39,872 nucleotides of DNA from Octopus bimaculoides (Eukaryota): the NCBI RefSeq assembly GCF_001194135.2, contig NC_069005.1, forward strand, positions 6,554,131 through 6,594,002. The letters run 5' to 3'. The position numbers and the translations under genes were made by a program. The notes under the pieces were generated by a model that had not been told where the DNA came from, ran no database searches, and worked only from the letters and a program-made list of their open reading frames with translations. Numbering within the stretch: position 1 is the stretch's first letter; the number at the start of each line of letters is the position of its first letter. This document shows positions 1 to 38,030 of the stretch, piece by piece.

Positions 1-122
1 ACTGCGGAAGAGGAGTAGTAGTAGGAGGAGGAGAGGAAAAGAAGTTGGGGGTAATGTAGGAGAGGGATGAAGAACATTATTTACATTATTTACATTTGAC
101 AGATATTTGTCTTTATCTTGTT

Positions 123-168
123 AACACAACGTTTCGGCTGATATACCCTCCAGCCTTCGTCAGGCGTC
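123..168 (-). ncRNA. Minimal type I hammerhead ribozyme motif (left arm)
   Basis: Minus strand reads gacgc-CUGACGA-a-ggcug[gaggguauau]cagcc-GAAA-C-GUU-guguu: core boxes, 5-bp stem II, stem I with G-U pairs, palindromic AACGUU stem III. Confidence 0.75.
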
Positions 169-365
169 TGGGGGGGAAATTTTGAACCTGGGTTCTCATT
201 CCTAACGATGTTACTATTATTATATTATTATTATTATTACTATTATTAATCAGGTCACTGCCGTGAATCGAACTCGGAATCTTGGGGTTAGTAGCCCACG
301 CTCTTAACCACTACGCCATATGTAACATCGTTAGGAATGAGAACCCAGGTTCAAAATTTCCCCAA

Positions 366-411
366 GACACCTGACGAAGGCTGGAGGGTATATCATCCGA
401 AACGTTGTGTT
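366..411 (+). ncRNA. Minimal type I hammerhead ribozyme motif (right arm)
   Basis: gacac-CUGACGA-a-ggcug...caucc-GAAA-C-GUU-guguu; one mismatch in stem II; predicted cleavage after position 406. Confidence 0.7.
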
Positions 412-1382
412 AACAACAAACAAGATGAGGACAAATATCTGTCAAATGTAAATAATGTAAATAATTCCTCATCTCTTAAATATAGAACTGGGGATGAAGA
501 AATTAAGTAGAAGAGGGTGCAAGAGGTGGAGAAGGAAAGAATAAGAAAAAAGAGGAGGAGCCCAGGATTGAGAAGATTTGATGAATTGTTGCATAAATGG
601 TGAAATATTTGAAGATATTTCTCCCTCCATACATACACACAAACACACACAGAATATTTTTTAAAAGTTACTGTATAAAAAATATATTGTCAACATCAAC
701 GAAAAATGTTTTAAAAGAAGAAATAAAAAGTAAATAAAATAAACTCCGAATAGAAGAAACAAAACAAAAAATGCGGAAATATTTGTTTTACAAAAAAAAA
801 AAGGGAGAAAAAAATCAACATACAAATATACATACATATATATATATATATATAATTTGTAGATTAAAAGGCAGCCAACTGTTGGAACTCGTTTACATAT
901 TAGGAGGCGAGTAACGACATTCCAAATTGGTTTGCTTGAATAATTGTGGAGAACTTTTTTACATGAAACCATTGGTTGCCTTGTTAATCTACAAACAACA
1001 AATATTTACCCACCAATGTGGCATTGAGCACTCATTCTCATTATTCGATACTATNNNNNNNNNNNNNNNNNNNNNNNNNNNNNNNNNNNNNNNNNNNNNN
1101 NNNNNNNNNNNNNNNNNNNNNNNNNNNNNNNNNNNNNNNNNNNNNNNNNNNNNNNNNNNNNNNNNNNNNNNNNNNNNNNNNNNNNNNNNATGTATATATA
1201 GGTTTGGCGGAACGAACACAAAACAGGCCTCAATTCATGTGTATACATATTCTTTTTTAATCAGCAGAAAAGTTACAGACATAACCCAAAAGTTTCATTT
1301 TTATATGTATGAAACATTCAGCCTTTGAGTCACTTACATAACATTTTGACTGATTAAAAAGTTATATATATATACATATAAA

Positions 1383-2859: not shown

Positions 2860-3195
2860 TCATCATCATCGTTTAACGCCCGCTTTCCATGCTTGCATGG
2901 GTTGGATGATTTGACTGAGGACTGGTGAAACCCGATGGCTACATCAGGTTCCAATCTGATCTAGCAGAGTTTCTACAGCTGGATGCCCTTTCTAACGCCA
3001 ACCACTCCGAGAGTGTAGTGGGTGCTTTTACGTGCCACCAACACAAGGGCCAGTCACGTGGTACTGGCAACAGCCACGCTCAAAATGGTGTTTTTTACGT
3101 GCCACCTGCACAGGAGCCAGTCCTGCGACACTGGCAACGAACTTGCTCGAATGGTTTTCTAACGTGCCTCCGGCACAAGTGCCAGTAAGGCGACG
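2860..3195 (-). mobile_element. Retroposon family C: (GAT)n tail, internal about 60-bp repeated units (GCCAGT...ACTGGC...GGTGGCACGTAAAA)
   Basis: Further copies at about 9812-9935, 10116-10430, 11960-12235, 12535-12770 and 15630-15807. The same 3' end occurs at about 24630-24770 (+). Confidence 0.8.
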
Positions 3196-4835: not shown

Positions 4836-5170
4836 AGGAGTAAAGATCCCCTTCGGTCATGAATGACAATGGGATTGCATCAAAAATGTTCCCCTCTGAG
4901 GCACAAGTCTGGGCAAGGCTGTTTATGGAAGACCAGCAGTCACCGATACATACCAGCCTCACCTCCCCACACCAATGTTATCCAAGGGAAAGGCAAAGGC
5001 TGATACAGCTTGGCACCAGTGACATCGCAACTCATTTCTACAGCTGAGTTAACTGGAGCAACATGGAATAAAGTGTCTTGCTCAAGAACACAACACAGTC
5101 CAGTCTGAGAATTGAACTCACTACCTCATGATTGTGAACCTGATGCTCTAACCACTGAGCCATGCGCCTG
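4836..5170 (-). mobile_element. SINE family I (tRNA-like head GGCTCAGTGGTTAG, TTGAGCAAGACACTT CORE-like box)
   Basis: Related copies at about 26165-26300 (+) and 32880-33050 (-). Confidence 0.75.
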
Positions 5171-5688: not shown

Positions 5689-6060
5689 TGTTGTTGGCAC
5701 TCCGTCAGTTACGACGAGGGTTCCAGTTGATCCGATCAACGGAACAGCCTGCTCGTGAAATTAACGTGCAAGTGGCTGAGCACTCCACAGACACGTGTAC
5801 CCTTAACGTAGTTCTCGGGGATATTCAGCGTGACAAGGCTGGCTCCTTTGAAATACAGGTACAACAGAGAAGGACGAGAGAGTGAGAGAAAGTTGTGGTG
5901 AAAGAGTACAGCAGGGTTCGCCACCATCCCCTGCCGGAGCCTCGTGGAGCTTTAGGTGTTTTCGCTCAATAAACACTCACAACACCCAGTCTGGGAATCC
6001 AAACTGCGATCTTATGACCGCGAGTACACTGTCCTAACCACTGGGCCATTTCGCTTCCAC
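5689..6060 (-). mobile_element. SINE family B, adjacent to a family A fragment (about 5600-5685)
   Basis: Reverse complement of 3812-4200. Confidence 0.9.
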
Positions 6061-8428: not shown

Positions 8429-8823
8429 TTTGTTGTTGTTGTTGGCACTCCATCGCTTAAAACGTTGAGGGTTCCAGATGATCCGATCAACGGAACAGCC
8501 TGCTTGTGAAATTAACGTGCAAGTGGCTGAGCACTCCAACAGACACGTGTACCCTTAATGCAGTTCTCAGGGATATTCAGCATGACACAGAGTGTGACAA
8601 GGCTGACCCTTTGAATTACAGGCACAACAGAAACTGGAAGTAAGAGTGAGAGAAAGTTGTGGTGAAAGAGTACAGCAGGGTTCGCCACCATCCCCTGCCA
8701 GAGCCTCGTGGAGCTTTAGGTGTTTTCGCTCAATAAACACTCAGAACGCCCGGTCTGGGAATCGAAACCACGATCCTATGACCACGAGTCCGCTACCCTA
8801 ACCACTGGGCCATTGCACCTCCA
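8429..8823 (-). mobile_element. SINE family B with 12-bp TSD CTCAG(A/G)GCATAT
   Basis: TSD at 8417-8428 and 8824-8835. Confidence 0.92.
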
Positions 8824-8865
8824 CTCAGGGCATATAGAATATGAGAAAGAAAAACAGCAACTTAC

Positions 8866-9057
8866 AGAATCTGTAGGAATGATATCAGCTAGGTCTTTGT
8901 TGTGCACAAGAATATCTCCATCGCGATTAAATGTTTTGAATACAAAGACGTCACGCTGATGTTCGACTGTTTGTAAGGTGAGATCAGAGGTGAATGAAGG
9001 AAATGATGAGGCCATTTTCCAGAGTATTGTTCCATCTTTACCACTGACCACCATCAC
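8866..9057 (-). CDS. FAM234B: FAM234-like exon 10 (VMVVSGKDGTILWKMASS...RDVFVFKTF)
   Basis: tctag acceptor and TCT|gtaagt donor; 192 nt, phase 0-0. Confidence 0.9.
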
Positions 9058-9754: not shown

Positions 9755-10044
9755 GAGCGAGTGCTGAAAAGTTCCTGGCTTTGGGTAAAAGAAAATACAG
9801 GAGGATCAGTTCATCATCATCATCGTTTTAACGTCCGCCTTCCATGCTAGCATGGGTTGGACGATTTGACTCAGGACTGGTGAAACCAGATGGCTACACC
9901 AGGCTCCAATCTGATTTGGCAGAGTTTCTACAGCTTTTATTTAAGCCCATAAAAGAACTCGGAAGGTCAGGCCTCCAAGTAGGCCTTTCAGGATACCCTT
10001 AAAACCAGGAACTTTTCAGCCCCTGCCCCTTGTAATGTATCTGC
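9755..10044 (-). mobile_element. Mariner-derived MITE family G, interrupted by family C (about 9812-9935)
   Basis: GCTGAAAAGTTCCTGG TIR; the two halves match 29637-29858. Confidence 0.75.
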
Positions 10045-10115: not shown

Positions 10116-10430
10116 TCATCATCATCATCCTTTAATGCCTGTTTTCCATGCTTGCATGGGTCGGACAGTTTGACAGGAGTTGGCCAGGCTGGAGAGCTAT
10201 CCAGGCTCCATTTGTCTGTCTTGGCATGGTTACTATGGCCGGACATCCTTTCTAATGCCAACTGCTATACAGAGTGCACTGGGTGCTTTTGATGTGGCAC
10301 CGACGCAGGTGCTTTATCCGTGGCATTGGCACGGGTTCTTTCTACATGGCACTGGCATGGGTGTTGTACATGTGGCACTGGCATGGGTGCTGTACATGTG
10401 GCACTGACCCACATGCATTTTATGTGGCAC
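10116..10430 (-). mobile_element. Family C-related copy with about 24-bp internal minisatellite (ATGTGGCACTGGCATGGGTG...)
   Basis: Shared tail; tandem units at 10285-10430. Confidence 0.7.
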
Positions 10431-11024: not shown

Positions 11025-11821
11025 CTGCAGAGACAAGATGGAAATAAAGAACTTGTTACATGTTGTATAGGGGGTGTAGTATTATGGAGGACATAGTTTG
11101 GGGCTTGTCCTCCAGCATATTAATGACTGGGTCACTTGTGTTCTCCTTTTAACTTGGCTACATTAAGATATAAAAGACGCATGTCTTAACCCTTTAGCAT
11201 ACAGATTATTCTGTCAAATGTAATCCTTATTTATACACATTGTTTGGAAATAATTCAAGCATTATCTCGTTGCTTCAAGTTTTCGATAATGTTGATATTT
11301 TATTTTTAGAATGACATTGCAGGACAGATGTGAGAGACTGGATCTGGGCTATTTTTTAATATAAAGAGGGTGCAATATTTGAGCCAGATGCAAACAGTTT
11401 AAGATTTGAATGGCTCTGTCAAAGGGAGGGAGACAAGCAATGCTAATAGCCTTTTCTAGAATCTCTGAAAGTGGTTGTAGTTCTGAGGCAGATAGCAANN
11501 NNNNNNNNNNNNNNNNNNNNNNNNNNNNNNNNNNNNNNNNNNNNNNNNNNNNNNNNNNNNNNNNNNNNNNNNNNNNNNNNNNNNNNNNNNNNNNNNNNNN
11601 NNNNNNNNNNNNNNNNNNNNNNNNNNNNNNNNNNNNNNNNNNNNNNNNNNNNNNNNNNNNNNNNNNNNNNNNNNNNNNNNNNNNNNNNNNNNNNNNNNNN
11701 NNNNNNNNNNNNNNNNNNNNNNNNNNNNNNNNNNNNNNNNNNNNNNNNNNNNNNNNNNNNNNNNNNNNNNNNNNNNNNNNNNNNNNNNNNNNNNNNNNNN
11801 NNNNNNNATTAGGGAACTTAC

Positions 11822-11959: not shown

Positions 11960-12770
11960 ATCATCATCATCATCATCATACAGACATGGGTTGGACAGTT
12001 TGACCAGGGCTGGCAAGCTGAGCAGAATCCAGTCTGATTTGGCATGGTTTATACAGCTGGATGCCCTTCCTAATGCCAACCACTCTGAGAGTGTAATGGG
12101 TGCTTTTATGTGCCACCAGCACAGGTGCCAATTTGCATGACACCAATATCTGCTACGACTATGGCTTGATGGGTCTTCTTCTCAAGCACAACATAATGCC
12201 AAAGGTCTCGGTCATTCATCATGGCCTCTGTGAGGAACAAAACTCCAATGCTGTTCCTTCACTTCAGCCATTGCAAAAAATCAATGAACAGGGGAGAAGC
12301 ACTACAAAACAAAGACACACCATGTGGTGCGGTTGGCAGACTGATGCCTGAGGGTTGCATCAAGTGGAAGCCTGAACTACAACAGGCTTGTCTCACAGAG
12401 AACGGTTCTAGTTACTTTTGGGTACTCCCTTGTACATGAATATGGTGGCTGTCTGCTTCTTGCACACACACATACTTGGTGGGTTTCTTTCAGTTTCTGC
12501 CTACCTAGTCCACTCACAAGGCTTAGCTACTTATCACCTCTGTGAGGCTCAACCTTTGAAGGGTGCTCTTTATGTGCCACCAGCACAGGTGCCAGTTACA
12601 TGACTCCGGCATCGGCCACAACAACGATTTCACTTGGCTTGTCAAGTCTTTTGAAGTATGGTATATCACCAAAGGTCTTGGTCACTTATCAACCTCTGTG
12701 AGGCCCAGCGTTTGAAGGCTGCTCTTTATGTGCCTGTCATGTGACACTGGCATCAGCCAATCATGCATTA
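11960..12770 (-). mobile_element. Family C-related sequence with about 155-bp internal units repeated
   Basis: Units containing TTTATGTGCCACCAGCACAGGTGCCA...CCAAAGGTCT...CTCTGTGAGG at about 12105, 12570 and 12725. Confidence 0.65.
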
Positions 12771-12779
12771 CCCTTGTAG

Positions 12780-13264
12780 GTTTCAATGGTGTGATTTAAA
12801 AAAATTTTTAGAATGACATTGTAGGGTAGGTGTGAGATGTTGGATCTGGTCAGTTTGAACATAAAACAGTTAATATATTTGGGTTTAATTGTTGGCACTC
12901 CGTCGCTTACGACGTCGAGGGTTCCAGTTGATCCGATCAACGGAACAGCCTGCTCATGAAATTAACGTGCAAGTGGCTGAGCACTCCACAGATACGTGTA
13001 CCCTTAACGTAGTTCTCGGGGATATTCAGCGTGACACAGTGTGACAAGGCTGACCCTTTGAATTACAGGCACAACAGAAACAGGAAGTAAGAGTGAGAGA
13101 AAGTTGTGGTGAAAGAGTACAGCAGGGTTCGCCACCATCCCCTGCCGAAGCCTAATGGGAATCGAAACCGCGATCCTATGACTGCGAGTCCGCTGCCCTA
13201 ACCACTGGGCCATTGCGCCTCCACTTGGGTTTGATATGGCTGGATTAAATGCTGAAGGGTTTAA
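12780..13264 (+). mobile_element. piggyBac-type MITE family F (TTAA-CCCTTTAGCAT termini), split by SINE B
   Basis: Other copies at about 5185-5343, 11187-11360, 15008-15063, 28170-28280, 28579-29030 and 32757-32833. Confidence 0.75.
12887..13224 (-). mobile_element. SINE family B with internal deletion, inserted in a family F MITE; TSD TTGGGTTT
   Basis: TSD at 12879-12886 and 13225-13232; F sequence on both sides. Confidence 0.9.
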
Positions 13265-13311
13265 TCTGGCACTAAACTGTACAAAAAGAGAATTGGAAAG
13301 CCTGGACTTAC

Positions 13312-13486
13312 CTGGTGAAGACAACTGACCACTGGTGAACAGGACAGTGAGCTTGTTATTTGATGACTTGTAGAGGACAGGGTTTCTATAGACGCCTGCT
13401 TTCGTAATGGAAATATTGACAAAAGTGCCTACAGCTTGTCCTGTAGCCCCAGAAAACAGCAGGAAACGACCAGAGTTGTCAGGGGG
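13312..13486 (-). CDS. FAM234B: FAM234-like exon 6 (PPDNSGRFLLFSGATGQAVG...VLFTSG)
   Basis: tgcag acceptor and G|gtaagt donor; 175 nt, phase 0-1. Confidence 0.9.
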
Positions 13487-13794
13487 CTGCAATAAGAAAG
13501 ATAATAGATATACATTATCATCATCAACATTAGGATCATGCCAGGTACATTTAACGACCCCTATTTAGCTCTGAATTATGCCAATGAGAGATAAGTGTCA
13601 CTTGTATTCTGGAGAGAATATCAGTCCTATATCAAGATAATTTCTTTTCAGAGTAATTTTAATGCCTCATCTACTGAATCTAAGAAACCTGAGGCAATGA
13701 TGAGAATTGTAAATGTTGCCTGGAAGCACAACAAAACTCACAGACCATGATTGATGCTTTAAAAGATCAAATATGTCTCCTAGTAACTCATTAA

Positions 13795-15283: not shown

Positions 15284-15383
15284 CTGACAAAATGAAAGAA
15301 GACATTATGCTGGCTTCCTCATCACAAAGCTGTGATAGAAGACCCTAACTAATGTGAAGGGCCATGGTGAGGGAATATTGTTG

Positions 15384-15477
15384 TTATTCAGGTCACTGCC
15401 TGGAATCAAACTCGGAATCTTGGGTTAAGAGCGTGGGCTACTAACCCCAAGATTCCGAGTTCGATTCCAGGCAGTGA

Positions 15478-15508
<31 letters not shown>

Positions 15509-15868
15509 CATAATATAACATCAAAAAATACCCTAAGAATGAGAACCCTGGTTCGAAATTTCCCCAAGACACCTGATGAAGGCTGGAGGATATATCAGCC
15601 GAAACATTTGTGTTAACAACAAACAAGATCATCGTTCATCGTTTAACGTCCGCCTTCCATGCTAGCATGAGTTGGATGATTTGACTGAGGACTGGTGAAA
15701 CCGGATGGCAACACCAGGCTCCAATCTGATTTGGCAGCTGGATGCCCTTCCTAACGCCAACCACTCAGAGAGTGTAGTGGGTGCTTTTACATGTCAAAAT
15801 GGTGTATTTTATGGCGGACAAATATCCCTCAAATGTAAATAATTCCTCATCTCTTAAATATAGAACTG
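15384..15868 (+). mobile_element. Second family D copy with inverted 5' head, interrupted by a family C insertion at about 15630-15807
   Basis: Head, (TAA)n and tail match 215-490. Inverted repeat 15384-15427 / 15442-15486. The tail resumes at about 15808 (ggacaaatatccctcaaatg...tatagaactg). Confidence 0.8.
15568..15614 (+). ncRNA. Degenerate hammerhead motif (CUGAUGA, intact stem II, GAAA; stem III and cleavage site mutated)
   Basis: gacac CTGATGA a ggctg...cagcc GAAA catttgtgtt. Confidence 0.55.
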
Positions 15869-17319: not shown

Positions 17320-17870
17320 TTGTGACACAGTGTATCGACATGACTGTAACACAATGCATCAAGATGAGTGTAACACAGTGTATCACCATGATTATGACAA
17401 TGTGTTGACATGGCTGTAACACAATGTATCACCATGACTAACACAATAAACATGACTGTGACACAGTGTATTGACATGATTGTAACACAATGTATCACCA
17501 TGACTGTAACAATGTATTGACATAACTGTGGCACAAGTACCATGACTAAAACAATGTATCACCATAAACTGTGACAATGTATCGACATAACTGTGACACA
17601 ATGTATCATCATGAGTGTGACACAATATATCAACATGACTGTGGCACAATTAATATGACTGTCACACAATGTATTGACATGACTGTGACACATATATTAA
17701 CACAACTGTGACAGTGTATCAACATAACTGTGGCACAATGTATCACCATAACTGACACAATATATCAACATGACTGTGACACATTGTATGAACGTAAGTG
17801 TGACACAATGAATATGACTGTAACAAGATACTGATATGAGTGTGACAATATATCCAAAATCATCATTGAC
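17320..17870. repeat. Degenerate minisatellite, about 24-bp unit TGTATCAACATGACTGTGACACAA, roughly 20 copies
   Basis: Visible periodicity; located just 3' of exon 2. Confidence 0.9.
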
Positions 17871-17925
17871 ACAATATCTAAAAAAACATATCTGAAAGAC
17901 AAAGGTATGTTTAAAATGTCCTTAC

Positions 17926-18294
17926 CATTGTTGCCGAAACTCAAATTCCACTCATTTGACAATGTCTGGCAGGGAGAATGCTGGGAGGAATTTTTATAAT
18001 GCAAGACGGCAACGACAAAAACGGTGATGGCGAGGATTACAAATAAGATTATCACCACATTTTTTATGATACGACAGCATGATGAATGACCAGCTCGGTT
18101 GGGGTCACGCCGCTTCAACTTGCTGCCCGGTAAATTGTCCAACTCTATGACATTTTTACTGAACTTCTTAACACCGTTCCGAGAAGCCGGAGTGATGTTC
18201 AGGTCTTTGTTGAAAATGATTTGATCTTCACTGTCATCGTCATCACTGATGTTTTGTTGTAAGGGTGAATAGACGACATTGTCACGATTGATTA
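17926..18294 (-). CDS. FAM234B: FAM234-like exon 2: cytosolic tail (YSPL, acidic SDDDDSED) and type II TM helix VVIILFVILAITVFVVAVL
   Basis: ttgcag acceptor and G|gtaagg donor; 369 nt, phase 1-1. VVYSPLQQNISDDDDSEDQII resembles the vertebrate FAM234B N-terminal EYDPLTQADSDESEDD motif (recalled, not searched). Confidence 0.88.
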
Positions 18295-18807
18295 CTGCAA
18301 AGACAAAACACAAAAAATCTAAAAATGTCCATAACAAAAACTGAAATATTGGCCTATCATTAGGCCAATATTTTTTACGGTAATCTTCCAGTTTCGAGGG
18401 GCTAAATAAATTACAAGGGAAATAACTGAACGTCTTACCAGTATTATCCGTACTACTTTGTTTATAAATAAATCGCGTGATTTGATTGACGTTAACTGCT
18501 TATATATAAATCACACACGTGATTGAATATCATAGTTTCTTATGAGAAATCGAAAATGCCTCGTGGAAGACCGGCTGCACAACATCTAACCCGAACCCTA
18601 ACCCTAAACTTTTATATTAAAAAAATTCCGTCGCATGCTGTTTGTAAAAAGAAAAAAACATTTTAAANNNNNNNNNNNNNNNNNNNNNNNNNNNNNNNNN
18701 NNNNNNNNNNNNNNNNNNNNNNNNNNNNNNNNNNNNNNNNNNNNNNNNNNNNNNNNNNNNNNNNNNNNNNNNNNNNNNNNNNNNNNNNNNNNNNNNNNNN
18801 NNNNNNN

Positions 18808-37591: not shown

Positions 37592-38030
37592 TGNNNNNNN
37601 NNNNNNNNNNNNNNNNNNNNNNNNNNNNNNNNNNNNNNNNNNNNNNNNNNNNNNNNNNNNNNNNNNNNNNNNNNNNNNNNNNNNNNNNNNNNNNNNNNNN
37701 NNNNNNNNNNNNNNNNNNNNNNNNNNNNNNNNNNNNNNNNNNNNNNNNNNNNNNNNNNNNNNNNNNNNNNNNNNNNNNNNNNNNNNNNNNNNNNNNNNNN
37801 NNNNNNNNNNNNNNNNNNNNNNNNNNNNNNNNNNNNNNNNNNNNNNNNNNNNNNNNNNNNNNNNNNNNNNNNNNNNNNNNNNNNNNNNNNNNNNNNNNNN
37901 NNNNNNNNNNNNNNNNNNNNNNNNNNNNNNNNNNNNNNNNNNNNNNNNNNNNNNNNNNNNNNNNNNNNNNNNNNNNNNNNNNNNNNNNNNNNNNNNNNNN
38001 NNNNNNNNNNNNNNNNNNNNNNNNNNNNNN

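Follow-up and report, generated by a model that had tools for sequence, protein, structure and literature searches.

A head-to-head insertion of a tRNA-derived SINE in octopus DNA with a tail that fits a Penelope-type minimal hammerhead

The DNA analysed here is a stretch of 39,872 nucleotides (nt) from Octopus bimaculoides (NCBI RefSeq assembly GCF_001194135.2, contig NC_069005.1, positions 6,554,131 to 6,594,002), hereafter called the window, in which positions 75-490 hold a single insertion made of two head-to-head copies of one octopus tRNA-derived short interspersed element (SINE). The insertion is 416 bp long and is flanked by an exact 11-bp target-site duplication, GGGATGAAGAA, found at 64-74 on the left and at 491-501 on the right. 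Since both copies of this duplication directly abut the ends of the element, 75-490 integrated as one unit, and the boundaries 75 and 490 given in a preliminary description of the locus are exact. In fact, the duplication sits precisely where likeness to the other arm of the insertion, and to a second family member in the window (copy 2), stops. The segments 76-214 and 322-465 are inverted repeats, approximately 90% complementary over some 140 nt, and therefore represent two tails on opposite strands. The minus strand carries a full-length SINE copy in the order head (326 to 253), (TAA)n (250 to 215) and tail (214 to 75), and the plus strand carries a second tail at 322-490, which belongs to an inverted, 5′-truncated copy reduced to its tail, with a full 3′ end that aligns to copy 2 through ...CTCTTAAATATAGAACTG. 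Alignment with the other tails showed that the minus-strand tail (75-214) is a short 3′ form, lacking a 25-nt extension and carrying a 7-nt deletion relative to other copies. The extension occupies 466-490 on the plus arm and is part of the family unit, because copy 2 and a further O. bimaculoides copy also have these 25 nt. The 3′ ends of both copies point outward and the 5′ ends meet at a central joint, 322-326, where a GTAAC microhomology is common to the start of the plus-strand tail and the complement of the 5′ end of the head; the joint is placed there by an ARAGORN cloverleaf that reaches 326 and by the tail, which begins at 322. The preliminary description had read the locus as one unit, missing the inverted repeats and conflating the two arms and strands; the RNA polymerase III (Pol III) tRNA-like head, the (TAA)n and the tail that it named do exist, and they lie on the minus strand (322 to 75). 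The window is scaffold-level sequence with assembly gaps (N runs) at approximately 1070-1330, 11380-11800, 25600-25900, 29900-30200 and 37600-38030, and insertions that are palindromic, as 75-490 is, tend to be assembled wrongly.

The family unit is non-coding and about 280 nt long. In it, a degenerate tRNA head that carries the Pol III boxes is followed by an internal (TAA)n and by a tail, about 170 nt in length, that runs from GTAACATCG to GAACTG. The head of copy 1, as the insertion at 75-490 is called here, lies at 253-326 on the minus strand and was delimited by Rfam, ARAGORN and box matches. Its A box, TGGCGTAGTGG (318 to 308), is a perfect match to the consensus, and a B-box-like sequence, GAGTTCGATTC (275 to 265), follows at a spacing of 32 nt, matching the B-box consensus at 9 of 11 positions in copy 1 and at 10 of 11 in copy 2. 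The Rfam tRNA model aligns to 318-261 with 16.7 bits, below the 29-bit cut-off, and ARAGORN found no tRNA at the head at default settings and a 74-nt cloverleaf (326 to 253) at the 90% threshold only, with an oversized anticodon loop that could not be assigned. The linker between head and tail is a (TAA)n microsatellite at 215-250 on the minus strand, reading (TTA)n on the plus strand, for which Tandem Repeats Finder (TRF) gave a period of 3 and 13 copies; copy 2 has its (TAA)n at the same place in the unit (15482-15515). Taken together, a tRNA-like head of sub-threshold score with Pol III boxes, in a short, non-coding and dispersed unit with a target-site duplication at copy 1, shows the features by which a tRNA-SINE is recognised. 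The window contains six perfect matches to the Pol III A box, where 0.5 would be expected, and five of them belong to other SINE families; these other tRNA-SINE heads have their A boxes, mostly TGGCCCAGTGG, at 5152-5162, 6038-6048, 8802-8812, 13202-13212 (minus) and 26823-26833 (plus). Additionally, the start of the tail, GAGAACCCAGGTTCAAAATTTCCCC (338-362 on the plus strand and 174-198 on the minus strand), matches GGTTCGANNCC at about 8 of 11 positions and resembles a degenerate second tRNA T-arm or B box; the beginning of the tail may be a remnant of a second tRNA-like unit.

Copy 2 was recognised by similarity and alignment at 15376-15868 on the plus strand. It starts with an inverted partial head (15376-15429, opposite in orientation to the rest), which is followed by the 3′ two-thirds of a head (15430-15481), the (TAA)n and a tail in two pieces (15516-15630 and 15816-15868), and it ends in the same sequence as the insertion does at position 490. 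The two pieces of the tail are split by an unrelated 185-nt interspersed repeat (15631-15815), which was inserted later than the SINE and has at least five more copies in the window, with 67-94% identity, at 2866-3037, 9820-9922, 12054-12108, 10125-10290 and 31613-31653. A third member was revealed by a 57-amino-acid open reading frame (ORF), considered spurious, that spans the plus-strand tail 322-490: its sole UniRef match is the O. bimaculoides "uncharacterized protein" A0A0L8FV75, with 82% identity, which places the window in an octopod and represents a third independent copy of the family. The 3′ extension is present in this relative as well, since its sequence (P0001) ends in ...SSSLKYRT, encoding the last 25 nt. 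The family is accordingly known from two loci within the 40-kb window and one protein-level relative from O. bimaculoides, and a profile search of the window with nhmmer yielded no further tails, just weak matches to other tRNA-SINE heads. These findings, together with the 11-bp duplication, establish that the SINE is a dispersed multi-copy retroposon, in agreement with the tRNA-headed multi-copy retroposon proposed in the preliminary description.

The tail contains a motif that, judged by its sequence, fits the Penelope-type minimal hammerhead. The search used a descriptor of our own, based on the text of an earlier survey (Cervera & de la Pena 2014, PMC4209133), which asks for a helix I and a helix II of at least 4 bp each, the boxes CUGANGA and GAAA, 0-1 extra nt after CUGANGA, Watson-Crick pairing of 15.2 with 16.2, U16.1 and H17. 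Its sole match in the whole window is at 123-168 on the minus strand (168 to 123), in the tail of the full-length copy, where the motif reads GACGC CUGACGA A GGCUGG-8 nt-UCAGCC GAAA CG U U / GUGUU, with a stem I of 5 bp (GACGC/GUGUU), a stem II of 6 bp that includes one G.U pair (GGCUGG/UCAGCC) and a loop of 8 nt. The cut site is GUU, with U17, and cleavage is predicted after 128 (between 128 and 127), 59 nt from the short 3′ end and 84 nt from the long one. The descriptor matched nowhere in 1,500 simulated windows of like composition (some 115 Mb scanned, both strands), and an analytic estimate gave a chance frequency of about 1e-9 per position, which amounts to a few matches per 2.7-Gb genome and to far fewer within repeat consensus sequences. 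Three hallmarks of minimal hammerheads emerged in that survey although its authors had not made them part of their own descriptor, namely a nucleotide between A9 and 10.1, a G10.1-C11.1 pair and a palindromic 15.2-16.2 (PMC4209133). An extra unpaired A between A9 and 10.1 is present in all three window copies of the motif; this A before stem II, which had been treated as an oddity at first, is a published hallmark of the Penelope-like element (PLE) class of minimal hammerheads. G10.1-C11.1 likewise closes helix II in all three, and the two arms of copy 1 both have a self-complementary ACGU. The motif has neither a helix III nor a loop 3, and cleavage would therefore require two RNAs to pair through ACGU and exchange helix I.

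The other two copies of the motif fail the descriptor. In the truncated plus-strand copy, the motif at 366-411 has a C.U mismatch in stem II (ggcug/caUcc), and in copy 2 the motif, at 15568-15614 on the plus strand, has an allowed CUGAUGA and a change of ACGUU to ACAUUU by which the palindrome is lost. Each of these lesions is private to one copy, several of them are CpG decays, and the majority consensus is the intact motif. Among the three DNA-level copies and the protein-level one, one change preserves pairing (A-U to G.U in helix I) and two are disruptive. The complete minimal type I hammerhead claimed in the preliminary description therefore exists at 168 to 123 on the minus strand, but the plus-strand motif cited for it is the mismatched one at 366-411, which is not downstream of the head, and the cleavage expected after position 406 would fall in the truncated inverted copy and has to be replaced by the predicted cut after 128. 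Similarly, no single copy of the insertion combines the stems quoted there, gacac/guguu and ggcug/cagcc, but both are found in copy 2 and match the consensus. The proposal that conservation of the core relative to its flanks across copies could refute a ribozyme is a weak test, because decay is neutral in dead genomic copies, irrespective of how the master copy behaves.

Two other CUGANGA...GAAA cores in the window (4633 and 19219) were rejected for want of stems. A strict pattern of the motif gave no match in a metagenome scan, and scans of genome contigs and of viral contigs were empty as well. A CpG-free pattern retrieved six metagenomic contigs (L001-L006) from different projects, all of which carry one identical microbial stretch; they share with the element only 25 nt of the hammerhead core, CTGATGATGGCTGGAGGGTATATCA (e.g. 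L002, 5558-5582), without a downstream GAAA or helix I, and this likeness was attributed to chance. Core-only pattern searches therefore yield false positives. A string search of the literature with the sequence of the element returned no paper.

In the Sm-alpha retroposon of Schistosoma, the type I hammerhead is canonical; it has a short helix III, is active and can be detected with Rfam-type models. Sm-alpha and Sj-alpha are tRNA-derived SINE-like retroposons with a hammerhead (Ferbeyre 1998 and Laha 2000, as cited in PMC2770079 and PMC8490949), and the octopus SINE shares with them a tRNA-derived head, dispersal of a short retroposon in high copy number and a type I hammerhead that lies downstream of this head. 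Unlike that of Sm-alpha, the octopus motif is devoid of helix III and loop 3, has the extra nucleotide of the PLE type and gives no Rfam match; the octopus SINE also differs from the Schistosoma elements in its internal (TAA)n and in its host, a cephalopod mollusc. A likeness also exists to the minimal hammerheads of PLE pseudo-long terminal repeats (pLTRs), which have a helix I of 4-5 bp, all three hallmarks, no helix III and an implied dimeric action (PMC4209133). Dual minimal hammerheads 100-700 bp apart on opposite strands have been reported among them (Cervera & de la Pena 2014, PMC4209133), and the octopus motifs are likewise dispersed both singly and as opposite-strand pairs in that range of distances. 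However, the octopus motif lies behind a Pol III tRNA head in a non-coding unit of about 280 nt, rather than in a repeat flanking an element that encodes a reverse transcriptase and endonuclease (RT/EN), and its helix II is 6 bp long against the 7-8 bp typical of the Schistosoma minimal hammerhead families.

Metazoan retrozymes are the third group to which the element can be compared. They consist of at least two units of 170-400 nt arranged head to tail, with a type I hammerhead in every unit, and are expressed as circular RNAs (PMC7229834), and they have been proposed, and recently argued on phylogenetic grounds, to be derivatives of PLE pLTRs (PMC7229834; Li et al. 2026 preprint). The octopus SINE resembles them in being non-coding, AT-rich, hammerhead-bearing and non-autonomous, but it is dispersed rather than tandem, has one hammerhead per unit and possesses its own Pol III head, and a tRNA-derived head is mentioned in neither retrozyme paper (PMC7229834; Li et al. 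2026 preprint). TRF detected no tandem repeat other than (TAA)n at either locus, and the motifs of copy 1 are on opposite strands; the tandem arrangement that defines retrozymes is absent, and the term "retrozyme hybrid" given to the element in the preliminary description does not apply in the strict sense. On the side of the head, the octopus tRNA-derived SINEs OK, OR1 and OR2 have been known since 1994 (Ohshima & Okada 1994), so that the head as such is not new; no hammerhead in OK, OR1 or OR2 is mentioned in the open-access literature searched. Penelope elements and 235 Rfam Hammerhead_1 matches are on record for the giant squid. Neither a tRNA-headed SINE with a PLE-type minimal hammerhead nor a PLE-dependent SINE was found in open-access papers, in cephalopods or elsewhere.

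The junctions of the insertion bear on how it arose. At the short end, the reverse complement of 64-74, TTCTTCATCCC, is identical at 9 of 11 positions to the element at 465-475, TTCCTCATCTC, an identity attained by 56 of 300,000 random 11-mers from the window; the cut end of the target could therefore have paired with the RNA at this place and primed internally. A similar match is present in the left flank of copy 2 (ATTCCCTCA against ATTCCTCA). If the comparison is extended to the target at 64-76 and the element at 465-476, TTCCTCATCTCT, the match is 10 of 12 in copy 1, and in copy 2 (15361-15376) it is 8 of 8 with one gap. Simple annealing does not account for bases 75-76 (CA); perhaps they are untemplated, or a third TGTAAATAA unit begins with them. 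An inverted partial duplication is found at each of the two window loci, of the tail in copy 1 and of a partial head at the 5′ end in copy 2, and the two parts of copy 2 are joined at a GGTTA microhomology, as those of copy 1 are at GTAAC.

Published work on PLE integration offers a frame for this arrangement. For PLE insertions, an inverted 5′-truncated copy placed directly against the 5′ end has been described, along with an optional short extension confined to one of the two ends (Craig 2021, PMC8557442), and both parts of this signature are seen in 75-490. A biochemical study of a PLE protein for which a dimer is predicted demonstrated that it cleaves both strands of the target and extends them, and that two nearby internal RT start sites explain the "tail" (Frangieh 2024, PMC11167929). 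The octopus insertion resembles PLE insertions in its inverted truncated copy, its one-sided extension, its putative priming from both strands and its cut site, which lies tens of nt upstream of the RT starts; the distance from cut site to RT start or end is 59 and 84 nt in the octopus element and about 85-92 nt in the anole element (by our own subtraction from PMC11167929). The outward 3′ ends, the two alternative 3′ ends and the microhomology joints would also fit published PLE integration. By analogy, the shape of the insertion suggests, short of proof, that a PLE rather than a long interspersed element (LINE) copied the SINE, and the mobilisation by a PLE partner envisaged in the preliminary description is made plausible, if not proven, by the head-to-head pair with its outward 3′ ends, the 25-nt extension and the microhomology.

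It is therefore with moderate confidence that region 75-490 may be regarded as a single SINE insertion with a PLE-type pLTR-like tail, copied by a PLE protein. In this case, one retrotransposition event of an octopus tRNA-derived SINE would have produced the whole of 75-490. Pol III would transcribe the unit from the head through the tail, there being no internal terminator, and the tail, derived from or mimicking the pLTR of a hammerhead-bearing PLE, would be bound by the RT/GIY-YIG protein of that element. This protein would cut both target strands 11 bp apart, and both 3′ ends would serve as primers. One strand, primed at the RNA's 3′ end, would give the plus-strand copy with the long end, its synthesis having halted at the start of the tail. 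The other strand would anneal at an internal site some 25 nt into the RNA, to which 9 of 11 target positions are complementary, and would be copied to the 5′ end of the RNA, this internal priming giving the full minus-strand copy with the short end. Joining of the two cDNAs at the 5-nt microhomology would finally leave the 140-bp inverted repeat.

Several observations weigh against such an origin. No direct repeat or partial tandem copy (pseudo-LTR) of the unit was found at either locus, and the window has no RT-like ORF that could represent a PLE RT/EN. The extension is 25 nt long, as against the 30-40 nt published for PLEs, and the target is homologous to the RNA at the internal start, whereas Frangieh 2024 (PMC11167929) reported RT initiation at sites without homology to the target. 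In copy 2, no recognisable target-site duplication was found, and the left arm ends inside (TAA)n rather than at the normal 3′ end. Regarding the ribozyme, only one of the three motifs in the window is intact, and the three to four copies available are too few for a real test of covariation. A check against Rfam models, suggested in the preliminary description, was negative: the hammerhead families Hammerhead_1, HH9, HH10, II and 3 gave no match at the gathering threshold in the whole window, none at E<=10 in 700 nt and none in 81 nt around the intact motif. By score, the motif belongs to no Rfam hammerhead family; this silence is expected, because the motif is devoid of helix III and the published searches used RNAmotif descriptors. 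Folding calculations are unfavourable as well. The active double hammerhead, in which helix I is swapped between two RNAs and which can be drawn as a non-crossing fold, has -21.5 kcal/mol, whereas two inactive monomers (-28.0) and the best dimer (-32.0) are more stable. If transcription ran through the whole insertion, the RNA would fold into a hairpin of -240.8 kcal/mol, so that only separate head-driven RNAs could form the ribozyme.

The strongest competitor, although an unlikely one, is that the element is an ordinary LINE-dependent tRNA-SINE, with for instance an L2/CR1 or RTE partner, which was inserted by twin priming and whose hammerhead-like motif is a non-functional relic, perhaps acquired from a PLE fragment as the composite SINE arose, or convergent. 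The 11-bp duplication is typical of target-primed reverse transcription by LINEs, the complementarity between target and RNA at the internal priming site is as in twin priming, and twin priming by a LINE could also yield inverted copies with a microhomology joint, a further point to be counted against a PLE. Just before the short end, a TGTAAATAA unit occurs in two copies in copy 1 and in one in copy 2, a repeat that we take to resemble the 3′ repeat tails of L2-type LINE/SINE pairs. The missing Rfam match and the nearest-neighbour model, which does not favour the active fold, count in the same direction. However, when one RNA undergoes twin priming, the resulting segments lie side by side and do not overlap, whereas the arms here duplicate about 140 nt and call for two templates or sequential copying. 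Inverted partial duplications at both window loci are unusual for LINE-driven SINEs, and the motif, which is very unlikely by chance, has the specific hallmarks of PLE minimal hammerheads.

The likely activity of the hammerhead concerns the main reading as well. The best fold of the monomer is an extended hairpin that keeps helices I and II and pairs G5-G8 with C15.2-U17, an inactive form. In a previous study, in vitro cleavage by minimal hammerheads was poor, in dimeric form too (Cervera & de la Pena 2014, PMC4209133), and cleavage was not needed for insertion in the one PLE that has been studied biochemically (Frangieh 2024, PMC11167929). On the main reading, the octopus hammerhead is probably weakly active and dispensable for insertion. 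In a second, less probable departure, in which a PLE remains the partner, the SINE family could be a PLE-dependent, tRNA-headed and Pol III-driven pLTR derivative, perhaps the first SINE family for which dependence on a PLE in place of a LINE would be shown, in which the hammerhead serves as an RNA dimerisation module more than as a processing ribozyme, a proposal that is rather improbable as it stands. Two RNAs joined through helix III and a swapped helix I may, on that proposal, be delivered together to a dimeric RT/EN, and such paired delivery would explain a copy on both cut strands and head-to-head insertions being common.

It is much less likely that the likeness arose by chance and that the tail merely holds an extended hairpin (stem I, a GACG/CGUU helix and stem II) without ribozyme ancestry. 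The core nucleotides are indeed paired in the minimum-energy fold of the monomer, and there is no match to an Rfam hammerhead. The plus-strand motif at 366-411 folds weakly (z = +0.42), and that of copy 2 (15568-15614) folds unusually well (z = -3.05), its two substitutions, C7 to U and G16.2 to A, together keeping the inactive helix G5-G8/C15.2-U17 (GACG/CGUU) paired. This paired hairpin could be a coincidence or, going by the predicted folds, a hint that the extended hairpin itself matters; both changes are CpG decays, so the pairing is weak evidence. Against chance stand the absence of any descriptor match in the 1,500 simulated windows, the frequency of about 1e-9 per position and the additional hallmarks, which a hairpin would not need. 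Least probable of all is a DNA transposon, either a miniature inverted-repeat or foldback element with terminal inverted repeats of about 140 bp (e.g. Mutator-like, with 9-11-bp duplications) and a captured tRNA-like segment, or else a palindrome formed after insertion by replication template switching, since the long, approximately 90% complementary arms and the 11-bp duplication that would suit it are accompanied by unequal termini (466-490 is present at the right end, in copy 2 and in the O. bimaculoides copy, and missing at the left end), by a copy 2 that is a head-(TAA)n-tail unit without long inverted arms, and by a head with a Pol III promoter in a unit that behaves as a directional retroposon.

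Beyond the SINE, four minus-strand ORFs in the window (17765-18337, 13004-13492, 8776-9057 and 1981-2394) look like consecutive exons of one host gene, with a transmembrane-like segment followed by an FG-GAP-like GDVDGDNQPDY. The only database relative, obtained with one of the candidate exons, is a 161-amino-acid Logan protein with 82% identity (from a 1.2-kb Logan contig), and a Pfam search of the candidate exons gave nothing significant. Copy 2 would lie in an intron of the putative gene, and copy 1 beyond its last exon-like ORF. The ORF at 17765-18337 is overlapped in its 3′ part by a minisatellite (17321-17853) whose unit is the 24-nt TGTGACACAATGTATCAACATAAC and which also shows higher-order periods, of 112-159 nt.

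SINEs are the textbook parasites of LINEs. A SINE that uses PLEs, a third class of retrotransposon, would widen this rule, if true, and would link the literatures on tRNA-SINEs, on the minimal hammerheads of PLEs and on animal retrozymes. Two-strand priming has so far been shown only in vitro, for one lizard element (Frangieh 2024, PMC11167929). The insertion at 75-490 would be a compact natural record of such priming, and the integration of PLEs would become checkable through genome-wide counts of end type and orientation. Octopus genomes are rich in SINEs embedded in neural transcripts, and a self-cleaving or dimerising module in an abundant SINE could affect many host RNAs.

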